A stretch of 64,000 bases of DNA, from NCBI RefSeq assembly GCF_040938485.1, contig NW_027270917.1:1364001-1428000 (forward strand), read 5' to 3'. The notes under the pieces are model-generated. The model was not told where the DNA came from and made no database searches. It saw nothing but the letters and a program-made list of their open reading frames with translations. Position 1 is the stretch's first letter. Each line of letters opens with the position of its first letter. This document shows positions 2,931-20,306 of the stretch, piece by piece. The translations under genes and the position numbers were made by a program. The DNA is from Diadema antillarum. Lineage: Eukaryota.

Positions 2931-4970
2931 TTTTGATGAAAGACCTTTGTATAATGCCGGTAGAAATCCATCTTTCTTTTTATCTACAATCTATGAGAAG
3001 CCCGGGATCGTTCCCAGCCATGTAATGCTGTACTAACCTTTGAGCTCAGTTACCTCTGATGCGCGAATATGGCATCCTTTATGGTTGTCCGCCAGACCAA
3101 ACAGTGCATAATAGAGTTGCACAGAGGTGTAAAACGAACATTGTGAGTTGCGTGACCATCCACTTGGTTATGACCGTATCTAAGCTATCACACGTATCAT
3201 TTCACAACGTTGAAACAGCTTCAAGCACAAAGTGCCATGAATTGTGTGCGAGTACAACTCTTTAAAGGCGTGTGAAAAAAGAGCAAACCATTCATTCCCC
3301 CACCCTGGGACAAACTCAGACTTCCAATCTATGTAAATCTTACAGACCTTTCCCTAATTTTGAAAAGATAAGGGAAAAAGATTAAAATTCATCCCTTAGT
3401 CACGTTTTGAGAGATGATTTAACAACTCAAATAATCACTCTCCTGTTAACAAGATATCATTGCTAGGTTATCATAAGAAATTTTTCAAAACACTTAACAG
3501 ACGGGATTAATCTTTGTTTTTGAATTCACCTAAAAATGATATTCTTATTTATCATGAGTGGTTGCGTTTAGTGCCTTTGTTCCGTTCAAACATGTGAAAC
3601 GATCATAACTTTGTCAATCGTTGGCAAATTTCCGACGTCCGACAAAATTTCTATCACTCGTCACTCTCCTCAAAAATTTAGATTCGGCAGAACAACTTCT
3701 CTAGAGACGTAAGCACCGGCAGAATTCAGGACTACGACAGTCGACGCCCTCGCTCACTCACTCGCAGTTAATGCTAATATAATATATGTAGTCGTATACA
3801 CATGATGGTGCATCAAATCCGTCTCCAATTTTGCTCATTTCTTCGACAATTTTGTTCGAGGCCAACTTTTTCGTGTTTTTTTAAAAATAGTAGTTTCCCT
3901 TTTTTATCACAGGCTACTCGAGGATATAATCAGAGAGCACTCACTCCGTCCTTTCGTGCGTAAAATCCATCGCAATTCACGTGATGATGGCGTATACAAC
4001 AGTCCACGACCTCTTGCTATGACCGACTGCTCCGAGACCGTGACAAAACAGCGGACCAGCTCTGGAGATGCTTCGCATGCCCCGTAACTGAGGACATAGG
4101 CTGGAAACTTCAGTGATACAGATTCGGACCATTTTTGCTCCCCATGAGGTAGGCCCTACTGCATTTATACATTGTATTCATTACGATATGGACGATGTCA
4201 ACTTTTGTACTCGTTTGTAGGACTGTATACTGGTCGTTATTAATGGCTTACTTTTTTAGAGTGAATATAAATTATTGTAGAGAAAAATCATTATAACATT
4301 AAAAAAAAAGTTTTTAAAAGACTTTTCCTTTCTCCCGTTTTCCAAGTTTTGCATTTTGCTGTACAGATTAATTTCCATCAACTGGTTGAACTCTTCTTGA
4401 TATTTGTTGTTTACATTTATAAGTCCTCGCAAGCTTTACAAAAGCAAATCTAAGAGTTCATTCTATAAATAACTGGGGCAGAATAGCAATGCGATTCATA
4501 TCGCTCTGAAGAGAAAAATTGGGTTTGAATGATTTTTCAAATTTCCGTAAATTGTTACCAAAAGTACATGTGAAATCATATGATGCTCGTCATGATTATT
4601 GTCCTGTTGTCAAAATCAATATGATGCTGTAGTCTATTGTCACCATTATTCTCAATATCAAAGCTAGGCTTGTTTTTTTTTATTCTCTCTCTCTCTCTCC
4701 TGTTCCTCCTTATAACAGAATGCCATAAAACTAAATCTGATGATGGCACTAGCATTTGATACGGAAAGCAGTCGACAGTTTGCATCCTATTGACGCTGAT
4801 CACATAACCACAGCCTGTGTTTGCATTGGCTTTCTTCACGACTCAACGCAAGGTGTCCGAATCTGCATCGCTGTTGACGAAAAGCAATGCCTCTGCCTGC
4901 TCTCTTCTGTGAGACGTCGATAAGAAAATAACATAAACTCCCTGCTGTGAAATCGTTTACTACTTTATAC

Positions 4971-7232
4971 ATGGTTCAGAGGACTCACACCATGTATTGC
5001 AAAGTGTCGCTTCCACAAATCTTAACGTCGGTGCTGCTCATGACCTTTGGTATGAGCACATGGGTGACCTTAAGTGGCATATGGGTGGAACTGCCACTCC
5101 TGACTAATTTCGGTATAGATGAAGGATACAAGATAGGGTCATATGTCATCGTCGTTACCCAAGGGGCTGTTATTGGTCCGCTGATATTTGTAGTCGTCCA
5201 GAGAGTGGTCCCGAAAGATTATCGCTTGGAGGTCCCAGTGATATATATCGTACTCGCTCTTGGGGCGGTCGGAAGTTTCCTCCTGATCTTCTTATGGGAC
5301 GACGATACCTTCTGGCCCCTGGATGGCTCTGACCACAGTACTGCTTTCTTGGTGCTGACGTTTTTCATATCTTTCGTTGACAGCACATCAAATCTTACAT
5401 TCATTGCCTTCGTTGAGGGCCTGAAGCAGAGCTACTTAAATCTATACTTTATAGGCGAGGGACTAAGCGCCATTCTCCCAAGTTTGATGGTGTTGATACA
5501 GGGCTCTGGAGCCGACGAAGAGTGCCTAGCAAATTCCACCTACCTGAATGTAACAGTTGACCCTGAAACCAACATCACTGTGATCCACAACTGCACAGAA
5601 TGGGTTGTGGGCATGGATCATGGCGAACGCTTTTCTCCCCAGATGTACTTTAGTTTCATATTCTCTCTTACAGCTATCAGTGCGGCGTCATTTTGTCTCC
5701 TTCGATGGATGCCAATCCTCCAAGGAGAGTACGAAATCATCAAACACAATGATACGGCAGATGAGAACCCGCGAAAATGCTGGTGTTGCTGTCTCACGTG
5801 CAATCCGTGCAATAAGGGCTGCCATACGAAAGATGAGGAATTTCCGATGGTTAGCCTCCGACACAGGGAACAACGTAAACTGGAGGGTGAAAGTATACTG
5901 AAAGGACGCGACAAAGAAGGAGCAGCAAAGACTCCCCACAATGGAAATAGCGGTTATAACTCCCTGGATCCTACCGGGCATTTTCCACGGAAGGCCTTAA
6001 GAACTTCCAGCTTAGACGATGCGGGAGAAGACAACGCCAGTGACAGCATGGAAGACAGCTCGCAGCAGTGTTCGTCAGATGCTGATGATGATAGACAACA
6101 CCTTACTGATTCGGTGAGCAAGACTCGTTCCTGTTCGGGAAGATACGCTTTTCTTTTCGTCACCCTGACAATTATAAGTGGGGCCACTTACGGATTTCTC
6201 CCGTCCATCGAGAGTTACTCGGCAGGTGCATACGGTGCGGACATATACCTCCTGGTCGCCACCTTCGCTGAGATGAGCGCACCAGTAGGGTTCCTGTTGG
6301 TGACGATCTATCCCACGAACAGCTATGTGGTTGTTGCCCTGACTTCCGCCGGTGGCATGATGGCGGGCTCGTATTGTATGGTGGCCGCCTTGCTTAGTCC
6401 TACGCCACCATTCCACGACCAATCTTTCGGAAAAGTATTTATCGTAAGTTGACATGAACTCTATGAAGTATTGTGATGACTGTCGTTTAGTTTTTCTTTC
6501 TTTTGTTGTTTAATTAGATAGTTGTCCATATTAAAGCGAGACTCCTTGGGTCATGGTTGCGTTTGAAACATATTATCACCTTCGATTACTTGCCCTTATT
6601 GTATGATCCATGAACTCCTCGGGTCTGGTGACATTTTAAGAATAGTTGCCGCTAGAATGCTTATTCTTCCGTTGTCAAAAATAAAGGTGTTTTTTTAATC
6701 AATAATATCATAATGAACTTGTATTGAGTATCGAGGGTAAAACCCTTCTGCAGTACTAAATCATTTATAAAAGAGTTCAGTAAAATTACTAGCCGACTTT
6801 GTTTGATATTGTTTGTGTGTGTGTGTGCAAAAACAGCCTGTAACACCACATCGCTGCACTTTTATTAGCAGATACATTCTATCCTGTATTAGTAATTATA
6901 TTTCAGAGATTATTGATCAAAATAATAATGGAAAATAATAACAGTTCGTCTGCTGTCGTTTGCTCGTTTTCTTCAATCAGCTTTTAGCGTGGATTCTTCA
7001 GGGTCTGTGCTTCTCTTACTGCCGGGCCACGATCGCCGGCATACTCCGAGCTGAAGAGGAGAGCCGCAAGCTGCTATTGTGGTTTGGCGGGTTCACCACG
7101 CTCGGGACTATGCTCGGAGCTTTCATCATGTTCCCGCTCGTGAGCATTCTGGGTGTCTTCACGGAGTACGTCCGAGATCCGTGCGCTGGCTTCCCTGCTT
7201 GCCTAGTGGTCGATCCCGACTTGATGACGTAG
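4971..7232 (+). CDS. SLC52A3: Riboflavin transporter, SLC52 family (RFVT/SLC52A3-like), ~574 aa, coding exons 4971-6443 and 6981-7232
   Basis: The N-terminus FGMSTWVTLSGIWVELPLL..EGYKIGSYVIVVTQGAVIGPL, the motifs SFVDSTSNLTF..F..YL..YFIGEGLSAILPSL..LIQG, ERFSP..YF and LPSIESYS..AYG, and the C-terminal LLWFGGFTTLGTMLGAFIMFPLV match the SLC52 family. Donor ATC|gtaagt at 6443 and acceptor ttcaatcag|CTT at 6981 are both phase 0; stop TAG 7230-7232. An alternative ATG lies at 4992. The paralog name is tentative in an invertebrate. Confidence 0.92.
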
Positions 7233-11400: not shown

Positions 11401-11487
11401 AAGAAGAAATTTTGTTGAGAGATAAAAGATACAGCGCCGCCATCGTTCGGTCGTGATTGCCTAGACTAGACTAGACAGACAGACCCT

Positions 11488-11783
11488 CTAGTTATCCTGC
11501 CTCAGTTGAGACAGTACACCTTCGTCAGGCTGCTGGGTGCGGGGGCGGGCTTGGGCGGCGAAGTCGGATGGTGTGTGGATACCCAGATGGCGACGGGGGC
11601 CTGGGGCCTGCTCCATACGCGTGAAGTCGTCCTGACCGATTCTGTGATGGACGCAGGAAGAATACAAGAAGAAGACTAGCTCAGAGTATGAACTTGCACA
11701 AACAAAAAAGTTTCTTAGAACAGCGTGTCTGCCTGATGTTAATGTCCTTTCTCTGTCTCCCTCTATATCAGTGTGTGTGTGTT

Positions 11784-11822
<39 letters not shown>

Positions 11823-14800
11823 AGGGGGGGTGCCTTGTCTTGCCCCCTTGCCCCCCCTCTCTCTCTCTCTTTCTTCTAATCTTTCTCAATTTACTCTGGG
11901 TTAGGTCCGTTCAAATTTCCAGCTAACTTTGCAAAATGTTCTCGAGACCAAGACTGAATCCACTGCCACCTATACTTAGCCACTGTTTTCATATTACATG
12001 ACAAAATAAAGGTAATTTCATCCTTTATCCTAAAATCTATATCTATACAAACTCGCCGACTGATTTGGGATTTTACGTTGATAGTTTCGCCATCGATATT
12101 ATAGGATGGAGTCTTTTGTAGGTCAACCGTCACAATATTACAAACGTCTAATCGACGTTCAACGTCCAGACCTATATTTTAGCAGTAATTGTCTGTGCGG
12201 GAACGATGATAGCCAAAAGAGTGTAGCGATAATTGGCAAAAGGAAAAGTACGTTTACGTGTTACGTACCTGTTAGAAGACCAGTGGTCACCGCAGCTGTC
12301 CACGTCACTGGTCAGAATCCACGTGGTCTTCATGACCTCGACGCCGTTGCAGACGTGACAGAGACCAGTCCAGGCGGTGACCGACGTGCCGCCGTTCCAC
12401 AGGACGGAGAAACTGACCGTCTTTCGAGATCTGTCGGCGGACGTCCAGCCTGTAATTCGGCCAGGGATGGTCCCTTCATTGGCAATAAAGGAAGCAATGT
12501 TATTACCCAATTTTCAATACGAATCTACTGACAATGCTACGATTAATAACAGCTTGCCATACCGGGGGTACCTTATTGTACCATTATGCTCACGAAATGA
12601 CTGGAAATGGTCGTAACGTTGTTATTTTTTTCTTCTTCATATTGTTAATTCTATATTCGAGAATGGTATTTTTATTTGGAATTAGTTGATACACCGGTAC
12701 TCTGTTGCCGTTCAACGAAGGCGCAATTATGCTGTTTTTGGACCACGAACAGACGAAATAAATTCTGAATCATTAAAACAGAGCACGTGATAACAGAAAG
12801 AACATCAAAATGTCTAGCTTAAAGTAAAGGGAAAATGTTACTACATAATCCTCATGAATGAAGTATTTTGTACGCTAAATACGGTAAGAATTGCCCGCGA
12901 ACTAAAAAGTGAGCTGAATAGCTCAAATAGCTCTTTAACCTGTCTGTAACCATTATTCAAACATACGTTTTCATCATCAAACATTACAGATTTTAATTCG
13001 ACATTGCATTGATGTGATGCCTTTCAACGCTTTCCCCCGTGACATCTCTATAACGTCTCTTATGAAATCAATTTTAAAATAAAGCAAAGATCTTAGCCAA
13101 CATAACGGTCACTGAATATTACCAGCTGCTCCAAGTTTACGCTCAACGGCAGTCCTGAATTCTCCAGTCACGTGACCAGACGGCTCAATTTCGATGATCA
13201 TCTCAGAACCATGCCCGTTATACCATGTGCCACTGACATTGCAGGCTTTGTTAAGAAATAAATAAAAAAACACACACACACAATGAAAATCTGCGTAACT
13301 TTCTTCAAATGACTGATGTGTTGTTTCCACCACACGAGATAAATTCGTATTTGAAACTGGCTTCTCCCTGTAAAAACTAAAAACAACCCCTCCCCCCCCC
13401 TCCACACACACACAAATAAAGGTAAATTAAAAAAATCCAACGATGAATGGTATTCCAATTGAATTTCGATTATATTTGAACGGAACGCTTTTTTTTTCAC
13501 GGATCCGAATTCTATGAAATAACAATAATATTGCTTTCAGTCATAGATTAGAATATGATTTATGATTTCATCGTCTAAAAACTTCTCATTGTACTGTACA
13601 AAACATGACATTTTATGTTATGAGAAATCACTGGCAGGAATGCTAAAAAAGAAAGCTCATCCAAACGACGCTTAAAGGCAAAACATAGTTCTGGTACACC
13701 TGAAAAAATTGTCAATTTTCGCTCCAAAATGTACACGTATGCCCAAGAAATGTGTGGAATAACGCTGTAATAACAAGATATTCGTTGGGTAACAACGCAA
13801 ATGCGAAATATTAACCAAAAATCTTCGCATCTCAGAACTTTCCCGATCGGGGTCAGGCTAACTCGGACACAACTCGGCCTCACTTAGAATATGACGATCA
13901 TGAACTGCGTATAAATTGTCTGAAATAGGGCCGAGTTGTCCATGAGAGCGAGTAAACCTGGATCCTTCTGGAATAAATACCGACTTTTACTTTTGATCTC
14001 AAAATACTCCGAAACAACGCATCATCCCGGCAAATCGCGCCAGCCAGGTAAGTTTCTTGGTAGACTCTTTCAATATATTGCAAGCAAATATGAAATGGTG
14101 CAAGACGGGTTCTCAAACCCTTACCAGAACTATGTTTTCACTTGAACTCTTTTTTGTATGTGCTTAGAATGCCAATTAGCAAAGAAAACCCCGGGGTCAT
14201 CCCACGAGACCGACACCCACGAGTCATACAGCCTACGAGTTACTCAGTCCATGAGTTCGACACTAAAACAAAAACCCCATGAGTCTGACACTAGGCAAAC
14301 AAAACCCACGAGTTCGACACTAAGCTAAAAATAGATAAAAAAAATAATAACAGATACATACATAAATAAATGAATAAATAAAAATTAAAAATTGAGTTCA
14401 ACACAACATAATGGAAAAAGTGGATCACGAGTTCGACGTTCCATCACGGGGCTTAATGTATCGGTCTCGTGGCAGGGCCTTGCTCGTTTAGTGTCGAACT
14501 CATGGGCCTCCTTTGCTTAGTGTCGGACTCATGGACCATCTTTTTTCTAGTGTCGAACTCAATGGTTGCATGACTCCTGTGCTGTGTAACTAATTGTGGA
14601 CTGTATGACTCGTGGGCTGTGTGACTCGGCTGTATGATTCGTGGGTGTCGAACTCGTGACGTGCACCTGAAACCCCAATAGCGTTGTACACACTTTGCAT
14701 GGAATATTGTCTCTGAAACACAAAGGGTTGATTTCTTACTTGCCACTCCTTCGACTTGACCGTTATCCTCTGGTATCTGAAATGGAATATATGAATTTGT

Positions 14801-15285
14801 TGTGGTAACTACAGGTATATTTACTTCTCTTGATTTAGAAAAGAATGAGTAAAATATGCACTTCCTCTATAGTATCCGGGAGAATATATTTGATTGAACG
14901 GACTTTTTTATGCTATGCCTTCTTTTAGATAAAATCCCATGAATGGATCTATGTTAAGATTTGTAGGTGCTCACTGGTCTGGAAGGTGCAAAGCTGCACC
15001 CGAAAAGGTGCTACAGTTCCATGTGTCACGGGCAAAAGGTGCAAAGTTGAACCCATTTTTCTTACGAGTGTTAAATTGCATATGGGTTCAGTACGTGTAA
15101 AAGTCATCTCCTCGTACCTGATAGACGACGGTCTCCTGGAAGGCAACGCCGACATCCTGGCCACCACGATGTCCGTGGTGGCGGTGGTGGTGGGGATGGT
15201 GGTTGTCCTCGGAGTTACGAGGAGTGGTGACAAAGCCGCTCGAGCCGAAGACGAGCCCGACCAGCAGCAGTGTCCAGTTCAGCAT
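11488..15285 (-). CDS. Secreted avidin-family protein (fibropellin-type avidin domain, no EGF repeats), 256 aa. Coding exons (minus): 15285-15118, 14776-14740, 13967-13884, 13245-13123, 12473-12269, 11641-11488
   Basis: The spliced product is MLNWTLLLVGLVFGSSG (signal peptide)...HHPHHHRHHGH...TCNVSGTWYNGHGSEM...TGEFRTAV...TVSFSVLWNGGTSVTAWTGLCHVCNGVEVMKTTWILTSDVDSCGDHWSSNRIGQDDFTRMEQ...QDN*. All five introns are GT-AG with matching phases (0,1,1,1,2), giving 771 nt. The sequence aligns by eye to chicken avidin and to the CHxCxGxEV motif of sea-urchin fibropellin avidin domains. A strong acceptor 3 nt before the ATG (15288) implies an upstream 5' exon that I did not locate. Confidence 0.9.
11771..11820. 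repeat. (TG)n microsatellite in the last avidin intron
   Basis: Direct reading of the sequence. Confidence 0.9.
14193..14667. mobile_element. MITE-like element with modular inverted arms, in avidin intron 2
   Basis: The left arm has repeated gagttcgacact / gagtcatacagcc modules; the right arm has the inverted agtgtcgaactc / ggctgtatga(c/t)tc modules. The spacer is A-rich. Confidence 0.7.
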
Positions 15286-15513
15286 GATCTGGAAATGCAA
15301 AGAGATCGAACAGCGAGAGCGATAACGTCACGGTTCGTACATCCAAGGTGTGTGTGGTAACTCCTTGGTACATCCCCGATAGAACATGACCTAAACACAG
15401 ACCCACCCCCGTCCCACCAGAAAGGAAATACTAGTACATATCACAACAGCTATTCTTATGCTATTACATTGTTACCAACTGTGTGTTAATTATGACTATA
15501 ACGATTATACTAA

Positions 15514-15646
15514 NNNNNNNNNNNNNNNNNNNNNNNNNNNNNNNNNNNNNNNNNNNNNNNNNNNNNNNNNNNNNNNNNNNNNNNNNNNNNNNNNNNNNNN
15601 NNNNNNNNNNNNNNNNNNNNNNNNNNNNNNNNNNNNNNNNNNNNNN
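15514..15646. other. Assembly gap (133 N)
   Basis: Run of N characters. Confidence 1.
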
Positions 15647-19207: not shown

Positions 19208-20306
19208 TTTACATTGAAGGATGGCAGAAAAAATTGTCCCTTTGAAGCGCTGATTTCTTATCGACATCCTCTTGAGCAGTTATCTGCGATTTACAGTTTA
19301 AAGATTGATAAACAATCACATATACCCGGGAAGCTGATTATTCGGTTGCCCTTTGTACCTCGTCATACAATCAAATCAGATGTTAGGACGAGATTTATTG
19401 ATGTAATAAAGATTCTCCTTCACTGGGCATTTGGAGGTCAGTTGACATGCTTTTCGAACAAATCATAAATTGCGCAACGTTTTGTCGAGTGACTATACCA
19501 ACTTTGACCGACGTATTTTCTAGTCAATTAAAGAAGTGGGATACTTCATTAGCCCCGTATTATAAAAGATAATTTGGCACACTATTACGAGAATATATAG
19601 CTTAGGATACTACCATGCGACATCATGATGATATAGGCATCATGCGTTGGCAAATGAAAGGCAGGGTTCGGGAAATCTAGACAACTAAAAAAGAACAAAA
19701 ACATACAGAAAACGGCGGTGTAAGGCAGGAATATATCCCATCATTATGCAAAGATGTTGCACGTAGTATTATCATAGGTCTTTTGAGTATAGAACGTGTG
19801 AACAACTTACTGACTATCCATACGAAGATAATAAGATCAAGTATGATCGCTTATCCAAGCCAACCGTTGGTGTTGTAGTATTGTTATATCAAAAATAATC
19901 GTAACACTGAGAAGGGAGATGTTCAAAAGGTATAAAGTAAGGAGAAAAACTTACCCGATTCATCTGGATTGATTTCAGAATTGGAGCTTTCTACAAGCGC
20001 GCTCTGTACTTCACAGGTAAAAAGCTGAAACACTGTCAAAGCTCCACCGGTAGAGTGTGGACCAGCTGCGATACCGATGGTTGCAAATACAATGGGCCTA
20101 ATTTGCACTTGGGACAGGAACTAAATGAGCATTGTATGTTAATCGGGCGTCTGTGTTATCGTTCATCGGTATTTGTACTTCAACTCTCGACACATAGCAC
20201 GATTGAACGGATGCCAAACAGTGCTTCTCGCGATCACACGGGGACCTCGGGGCAAAGCTTGTCTCGTATGACAAAGGCCGCGGGGGGTATTGTCCGGGGG
20301 TATTAG
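19208..20306 (+). CDS. Candidate coding exons of an unidentified gene, possibly ZU5-like (19208-19436; 20017-20133 or read-through to stop 20306)
   Basis: Strong acceptor ccttggccttttctcccag|TTT and donor GGAG|gtcagt bound a 229-nt open exon (FTLKDGRKNCPFEALISYRHPLEQLSAIYSLKIDKQSHIPGKLIIRLPFVPRH...). The next acceptor ctgtacttcacag|GT is phase-compatible. The ZU5 resemblance (xLSxIYSL...IPxxLIIRLPF) is by eye only. No start codon or complete model was established. Confidence 0.35.

Follow-up and report, generated by a model that had tools for sequence, protein, structure and literature searches.

Does the genome of the sea urchin Diadema antillarum encode an avidin that binds biotin, or is its avidin-like sequence a non-binding module of the fibropellin type? 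The question is raised by a gene on the minus strand of the window analysed here, a stretch of 64,000 nucleotides of contig NW_027270917.1 (positions 1,364,001 to 1,428,000; assembly GCF_040938485.1). Avidins rank among the major tools of biotechnology, and what they do in nature is still debated. An earlier note on this DNA, made from the letters of the sequence, placed a stand-alone avidin at 11600-13245; this interval covers exons 4, 5 and part of exon 6, which make up the avidin domain, but its lower bound cuts exon 6, the end of which is at 11488. The complete gene occupies 19963-11488 of the minus strand and, as we judge with fairly good confidence, encodes a secreted single-domain avidin of 232 amino acids that binds biotin in the manner of zebavidin. 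The kind of gene is not new, as the family is well known and this member is already annotated by NCBI as protein-coding 'avidin-like'.

The coding sequence consists of six exons comprising 699 nt (232 codons and the stop). In a table of the junctions over the six exons, all five introns are of the GT-AG type and all exons are intact, which bears out the six-exon model of the earlier note. The NCBI-derived gene call on contig JBFRCO010000029.1 of GCA_040938485.1 has a span of 8476 nt, which is exactly 19963-11488. When the corresponding protein (P0093, 'avidin-like [Diadema antillarum]', 232 aa) was searched against the window by tblastn, exons 2-6 aligned and were identical over each exon's own residues; the figures below 100% for exons other than exon 5 represent alignments running on into intron. 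The 9-nt exon 1, ATGAATCGG followed by gtaagt, is too short for tblastn alignment and was placed by pattern search. The same search with P0093 revealed no second avidin copy in the 64-kb window. Throughout this work the exons were searched one by one, whole-protein analyses were performed on P0093, and dN/dS was calculated per exon.

Three open stretches of the minus strand contain avidin sequence, namely CNVSGTWYNGHGSEMIIEIEPSGHVTGEFRTAVERKLGAA (13243-13124), TIPGRITGW...WILTSDVDSCGDHWSSN (12471-12271), and a third that starts from 11640 with IGQDDFTRM and continues through to the stop codon TAG of exon 6 at 11490-11488. Exon 4 carries the equivalents of the C4, N12, S16, F33 and T35 positions of avidin, the N-glycosylation sequon CNVS, and the start of the 'GAAG' loop between strands 3 and 4 (L3,4), while exon 5 carries the W70, S75, T77, W79, C83, W97, L99 and W110 equivalents together with two additional cysteines, C155 and C174. 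The signal peptide in exon 2 is called from composition only; the in-exon ATG context of this exon is located at 15285.

The Pfam Avidin domain (PF01382) is recognised in exon 4 alone (E 1.1e-7, profile positions 1-37) and in exon 5 alone (E 1.1e-17, positions 44-107), and the two exons searched separately against the PDB match avidin, zebavidin and streptavidin chains; the avidin domain is therefore real, far beyond chance. On P0093 it is the sole domain, scoring 112.3 bits against a cut-off of 24 and covering the full profile (1-116/116) with residues 75-189. A phmmer search of the PDB with the whole protein gave zebavidin (4e-22) and avidin (7e-18). The AlphaFold2 model, built from a 70-sequence alignment, has a pLDDT above 90 over residues 71-210 and contains eight strands and one short helix (174-179), that is, the eight-stranded antiparallel barrel with the short L7,8 helix that is a trait of the avidin family. 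Model confidence is low for the first 70 residues (leader, His-rich run and linker); the C-terminal tail has a pLDDT of 94-95 up to about residue 210, which suggests that it packs on the barrel. The best Foldseek match is zebavidin (4bj8; target-normalised TM 0.91, rmsd 1.5-1.7 A, 42-44% identity), followed by AVR4, xenavidin, avidin and streptavidin, with target-normalised TM values of 0.82-0.88 for avidin, AVR4 and xenavidin. The profile search, which the earlier note had proposed as a check, and the prediction of the monomer structure thus point the same way, with zebavidin as the closest structure.

The biotin pocket was mapped by aligning the complete Diadema protein (232 aa) with chicken avidin in HMMER (4i60/1avd chain numbering). 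N12, S16, T35, V37, W70, S75, T77, W97, L99 and W110 of avidin correspond to N82, S86, T104, V106, W139, S144, T146, W165, L167 and W178 of the Diadema protein, and the C4/C83 pair to C74/C152. The substituted positions are L14 (H84), Y33 (F102), F72/S73 (G141/G142), F79 (W148) and N118 (D186). All residues that the earlier note, aligning by eye, had called as kept or changed are reproduced. The ten contact positions N12, S16, Y33, T35, W70, S75, T77, F79, W97 and N118 thus read N, S, F, T, W, S, T, W, W and D, and in this alignment the Tyr33 hydroxyl is the only non-conservative loss among them. Tryptophan at F79 and aspartate at N118 are common within avidins (PMC3811995), and the Y33F substitution in avidin is tolerated 'without severe loss' of affinity (PMC3029397). 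Histidine at the L14 position is frequent among invertebrate members in the family alignment, and the pocket residues are conserved across six echinoid orthologues and asteroid relatives. Chicken avidin (1avd) shares with the Diadema protein the fold, the C4-C83 positions and 9 classic contact residues, and it is a secreted glycoprotein, as is predicted for the Diadema protein. The two are ~35% identical; in the Diadema protein the L3,4 loop is longer and of another sequence, and there are additional cysteines and extensions at both termini.

The closest counterpart of this pocket is that of zebavidin from Danio rerio (4bj8), which is the best PDB sequence match among natural single-domain avidins. 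According to the published list of its biotin-lining residues (PMC3811995), 14 of 19 are identical in the Diadema protein and one more is avidin-like, and the differences in the pocket are L16H, Y33F, S39R and T40K. Both proteins share the 'AVE..GAAG' L3,4 loop, W78 and D117 of zebavidin, and a CNV(S/T)G sequon where the domain begins; in zebavidin Tyr33 and Leu16 are retained, and a second cysteine pair, the His-rich segment and a long tail are lacking. In zebavidin, Ala43 and Ala44 of the GAAG loop stand in for avidin Phe72 (PMC3811995), so the missing F72/S73 of the Diadema protein can be explained by a zebavidin-type loop filling the Phe72 space. Zebavidin is a nanomolar binder with a literature Kd of about 2-5 nM, and its dimer becomes a tetramer upon biotin binding.

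The best-known avidin-like domains of sea urchins are found at the end of mosaic proteins. In L. pictus fibropellin-3 (XP_054771358.1), Pfam identifies a CUB domain and seven EGF repeats followed by Avidin, and in the S. purpuratus 'hyalin', HYR repeats and EGF followed by Avidin. The fibropellin domain has the same Pfam domain and four-cysteine pattern and belongs to the same ambulacrarian branch as the Diadema gene; as cited in PMC8033661, Yanai 2005 reports that it serves oligomerisation and does not bind biotin. In P0093 neither EGF nor CUB modules were found by Pfam. Within the whole 64-kb window, no EGF-like exon was detected by a six-frame scan for cysteine patterns or by tblastn with fibropellin-3 and hyalin, and the idea that the locus is the C-terminal domain of a mosaic gene is rejected for the window. 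The earlier note was therefore right in describing a gene devoid of EGF repeats. Its contrast with fibropellin, said there to lack the W70 and W110 equivalents, is also borne out, since the avidin-like domains of L. pictus fibropellin-3, S. purpuratus 'hyalin' and one crinoid protein (P0042, P0073 and P0081) have R/Q/R at W70 and K/R/K at W110. In all three S16 is replaced by D, and Y33 is changed in two; in contrast, the Diadema protein keeps W139, W178 and S86. The double mutation W70R+W110K virtually abolishes biotin binding of avidin (PMC8033661).

The 'hyalin' protein itself (XP_030835760.1; P0073/P0100) has 829 aa and comprises seven HYR and two EGF domains and a terminal avidin-like domain in which W70 is replaced by Q and W110 by R. 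It represents a second kind of sea-urchin extracellular mosaic with an avidin module of the non-binding type, beside fibropellin.

A search with exon 5 by phmmer recovered stand-alone proteins of 145-221 aa with 68-73% identity, of which the named one (P0003) is a Lytechinus 'fibropellin-3-like' protein; searching with the latter in turn recovered P0093. The echinoid class defined in this way includes S. purpuratus XP_790505.1 (223 aa), proteins of L. pictus and L. variegatus (221 aa), and two unnamed echinoid transcripts. In the alignment, all members have the leader, the His-rich stretch, F33 and a tail of the form ...PGPR.H.G..TPSD...EGVLSQ. The orthologues in Strongylocentrotus and Lytechinus are labelled 'fibropellin-3-like' by NCBI, and for this class the names 'fibropellin-3-like' and 'fibropellin-like' are mislabels. 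Further stand-alone relatives are present in Asterias, Holothuria, Apostichopus, the crinoid Anneissia and the hemichordate Ptychodera.

Complete intronless orthologous open reading frames (ORFs; P0092 and P0084) with 5' and 3' untranslated sequence were found in four environmental contigs of ~1 kb, with in-frame stops directly upstream of the MNKI/MNRM start. These features indicate that the contigs are transcripts of the stand-alone gene of related echinoids. Such transcripts, from related echinoids rather than Diadema, speak against splicing of the domain onto upstream EGF exons, which the earlier note had named as evidence that would overturn its reading. The contigs come from the environmental assemblies of JGI samples 3300032616, 3300032491 and 3300032734 and of SRR9649869. 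These messenger RNAs suggest that the source sea urchins may express the gene while planktonic, as larvae or eggs.

In a maximum-likelihood tree of 41 avidin domains, the echinoid class of ~220 aa forms a clade with support of 87/80, and together with strongavidin, which is placed on a long branch, a clade with support of 99/97. The mosaic domains (fibropellin, hyalin and crinoid) group in a clade by themselves (100/99), apart from the Diadema gene; the phylogeny that the earlier note had proposed as a check thus groups the gene with strongavidin and not with fibropellins. Strongavidin is the S. purpuratus protein XP_030849314.1 ('avidin-related protein 4/5'); Additional file 2 of PMC8033661 contains its sequence, and that paper counts it among 14 functionally verified avidins. 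It likewise is a stand-alone sea-urchin avidin domain, ~47% identical to P0093 in the alignment, and exon 5 has 60% identity to P0012, the representative of the S. purpuratus cluster. Both proteins keep W70, W97, W110 and D118, and in both genes one intron precedes the C4 codon and one falls at the R114 equivalent; a further intron lies in the L3,4 loop. Strongavidin differs in having Tyr33, in the absence of Cys83, and in the sequence GDAPPTP in place of the GAAG loop, and its NCBI model has no His-rich N-terminal segment, hydrophobic leader or C-terminal tail, all of which are features of the Diadema protein. Since the 223-aa S. purpuratus protein (P0091) is closer and lies inside the class, while strongavidin lies outside it though inside the joint clade, strongavidin is a paralogue rather than an orthologue. 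The introns before the C4 codon and at R114/V115 also coincide with those of the avidin gene of the fish Pangasianodon, the one vertebrate gene compared; the middle intron follows GAAG in Diadema versus a position within the L5,6 loop in Pangasianodon. Overall, the gene encodes a stand-alone, probably secreted avidin with a nearly intact zebavidin-like pocket, distinct from fibropellin, and biotin binding by the Diadema avidin is likely.

Besides the C74/C152 pair, the alignment identifies C155 and C174. In the AlphaFold2 model, C155 ends strand beta6 beside the 156-157 hairpin (beta6-beta7), and C174 opens the helix that comes after the distal end of strand beta7, which is 12 residues long (158-169). 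The two extra cysteines described by the earlier note are thus present, but the second disulfide it envisaged would be implausible as an intrachain bond, because most of the barrel length separates the two residues in one chain of the model. The equivalents of C174 in avidin (Ile106; PMC1831776) and zebavidin (Leu105; PMC3811995) are residues of the 1-4 interface, and avidin Ile106 contacts Lys94 of the partner's beta7 (PMC1831776). Of 75 family domains, 44 carry equivalents of both C155 and C174 (Fisher p 1.6e-4, uncorrected for phylogeny). From the model, the most likely arrangement would be a reciprocal inter-subunit disulfide, C155-C174', across the 1-4 structural dimer. Nordlund and colleagues reportedly engineered in 2003 an avidin (D86C+I106C) with 1-4 inter-subunit bridges. 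The fibropellin-type domains share this cysteine pair, which would fit their reported use in oligomerisation.

The mode of action proposed for the Diadema avidin is as follows. After cleavage of the signal peptide and N-glycosylation at the CNVS sequon, the barrel would bind D-biotin much as zebavidin does. N82, S86, T104 and D186 would keep the ureido ring in place, with F102 instead of Tyr33 and hence no hydroxyl there; W139, W148 and W165, joined by W178 from the partner subunit, would pack against the bicyclic ring; and S144, T146, L167 and A112/A113 of the 'GAAG' loop would form the wall around the valeryl chain, the loop occupying the place of avidin Phe72. The protein would assemble as a dimer of dimers in which C155 and C174 most likely link the subunits covalently within the 1-4 structural dimer, and its affinity would be expected to be nanomolar or better and lower than that of chicken avidin. 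Its probable role would be extracellular sequestration of biotin in antimicrobial or egg/larval defence. Such a role has been suggested for avidins generally, and amphioxus avidins, reported as opsonins induced by bacteria (PMC8033661), respond to bacterial challenge.

Several points weigh against this explanation. The Tyr33 hydroxyl is gone and avidin L14 is replaced by His84, and the L3,4 contacts to the biotin carboxylate (T38/A39/T40 in avidin, S39/T40 in zebavidin) are E/R/K in Diadema. The C-terminal tail, confidently modelled as it is, could lie over or within the pocket. PMC8033661 cautions that residues alone give no reliable verdict on biotin binding, and in the literature searched no binding, oligomer or expression data on the Diadema protein or its direct orthologues were found; for a characterised orthologue or echinoderm avidin biology, this literature gave only the mention of strongavidin. 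The inter-subunit disulfide is based on model topology, interface lists and the avidin (D86C+I106C) reportedly engineered with such bridges. The splice model rests on the sequence, the NCBI model and the transcripts of orthologues. Finally, the dN/dS ratios of 0.08-0.39 obtained exon by exon against two transcript orthologues, which indicate that the avidin exons are under purifying selection, are rough values, as dS is saturated.

With these points in mind, the protein might be imagined as an avidin fold that does not bind biotin but acts, like fibropellin, as a secreted oligomerisation or extracellular-matrix module whose disulfides and tail mediate assembly. Fibropellin-type domains likewise have four cysteines in the pattern CHxC...C and a tail that opens with 'TR.E...P', and in the fibropellin case they oligomerise and reportedly do not bind biotin; the NCBI names of the orthologues, the Y33F and L14H replacements and the altered L3,4 loop point in the same direction. 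However, the two tryptophans lost from the mosaic domains are both kept, along with N12, S16, T35, S75, T77, W97 and D118, and are conserved in echinoid and asteroid relatives, the Y33F change is one that avidin tolerates, and the tree separates the gene from the fibropellin clade, all of which make this explanation unlikely. Somewhat less probable again is a ligand other than free biotin, such as a small hydrophobic or carboxylate compound, biotinylated peptides or a microbial surface recognised in an opsonin-like fashion, with the His-rich segment adding metal- or pH-dependent binding. The opsonin-like, bacteria-induced amphioxus avidins provide a precedent, and the conservation of a His-rich stretch among echinoid orthologues and the basic R108/K109 at the pocket mouth in place of A39/T40 would be consistent with it. 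Nevertheless, the residues that hold the ureido and thiophene rings are essentially intact, which would be hard to explain without biotin or a close analogue, and such a ligand would be compatible with, and not exclusive of, biotin binding. As for a silent or decaying copy with an ORF retained by chance, no RNA run is listed for 11450-15350; six intact exons with canonical junctions, dN far below dS in the comparison with two orthologues, transcription of the orthologues as complete mRNAs and the protein-coding annotation by NCBI render it very improbable. The reading that we prefer is thus a secreted avidin that binds biotin in the zebavidin manner.

A broader proposal can be put forward tentatively, and we would not expect all of it to hold. 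The four-cysteine invertebrate avidins, a group to which the fibropellin domain and the double-avidins of annelids belong along with the Diadema gene and its relatives among the Ambulacraria, may be natural covalent dimers linked by C155-C174' at the 1-4 interface; the conserved tail (FTR.E..PGPR....TP) may be a lid or interface element that tunes access of biotin; and the gene, which evolves slowly, may be the closest living stand-in for a biotin-binding ancestor out of which the non-binding oligomerisation domain of fibropellin was recruited.

The coordinates of the exons and other features of the locus are listed below.

Table 1. Features of the avidin locus and its surroundings in the 64,000-nt window
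Feature	Position	Strand	Evidence
Coding exon 1, ATG AAT CGG (Met-Asn-Arg), donor CGG/gtaagt	19955..19963	-	pattern search; agrees with 'MNR' start of P0093
Coding exon 2, hydrophobic signal-peptide-like segment IMLNWTLLLVGLVFGSSG, then His-rich HHPHHHRHHGH	15118..15288	-	sequence reading, tblastn with P0093
His-rich stretch, directly after the predicted leader	15165..15215	-	
Coding exon 3, 37-nt linker, IPEDNGQVEGVA + 1 nt	14740..14776	-	sequence reading, tblastn, junctions
Coding exon 4, N-terminal third of avidin domain	13123..13245	-	Pfam Avidin, PDB matches, tblastn
Sequon C-N-V-S/T at domain start	13240..13232	-	
Coding exon 5, avidin-domain core	12269..12473	-	Pfam Avidin, PDB alignments to avidin and zebavidin, tblastn 100%
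Coding exon 6, last barrel strand IGQDDFTRM (D118 equivalent) and C-terminal tail EQAPGPRRHLGIHTPSDF...EGVLSQLRQDN	11488..11641	-	sequence reading, tblastn, junctions
Assembly gap, 133 N, within intron 1	15514..15646	.	sequence
(GT)n/(CA)n microsatellite, then C/T-rich run, within intron 5	11770..11830	.	sequence reading
SLC52-type riboflavin transporter	4947..7232	+	PF06237
TANGO6	from about 28699	+	PF25267, PF23565, PF10363

In the His-rich stretch, 9 of 12 residues are His in Diadema. Across the echinoid orthologues (P0091, P0003, P0092 and P0084) its position is conserved and its sequence is not, and neither strongavidin nor the relatives in asteroids, crinoids and the hemichordate have such a stretch. 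The sequon at the domain start is common to the echinoid orthologues, zebavidin and catfish avidins; the site of chicken avidin is Asn17.

Two further arrangements of avidin domains were observed among the relatives. Asterias rubens (LR699095.1) has a tandem pair ~5.6 kb apart on the same strand, encoding proteins of 212 aa (L004:10001-14299) and 142 aa (L004:19927-21534); relative to the long class, the short one resembles strongavidin in lacking Cys83 and most of the tail. Proteins of 329-416 aa (P0004, P0006-P0011) contain two tandem avidin domains in which the pocket residues are mostly kept. Two of them, from Owenia fusiformis (CAH1779432.1) and Ridgeia piscesae (KAK2192235.1), are annelid proteins. 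Several have a hydrophobic C-terminal segment resembling a membrane anchor. The double-avidins share the PGPR tail motif, located after the second domain.

The downstream neighbour of the avidin gene, oriented tail-to-tail and lying ~4.2 kb past its stop, encodes the SLC52-type riboflavin transporter (567 aa), so that a transporter of vitamin B2 lies beside a binder of vitamin B7. A vitamin-gene cluster was considered and rejected: no SLC52 neighbour is present within 10 kb at the L. variegatus or A. rubens loci, and the adjacency is therefore probably a coincidence. Upstream, the divergently oriented TANGO6 gene begins ~8.7 kb from avidin exon 1.

The general picture of the family is unchanged by this gene, as strongavidin was already counted as verified and the gene already bears the name 'avidin-like'. 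What the gene represents is a conserved, slowly evolving class of stand-alone avidins present in four echinoderm classes (echinoids, asteroids, holothurians and crinoids) and a hemichordate, which is mostly mislabelled 'fibropellin-like' in databases and of which no characterised member was found in the literature searched. Its possible natural inter-subunit disulfide is comparable to a feature that was reportedly engineered into avidin for stability, and the His-rich, tail-bearing variant is a potential addition to the avidin toolbox. For the family itself, whether members of this class bind biotin bears on whether the ancestor of the fibropellin domain did so.

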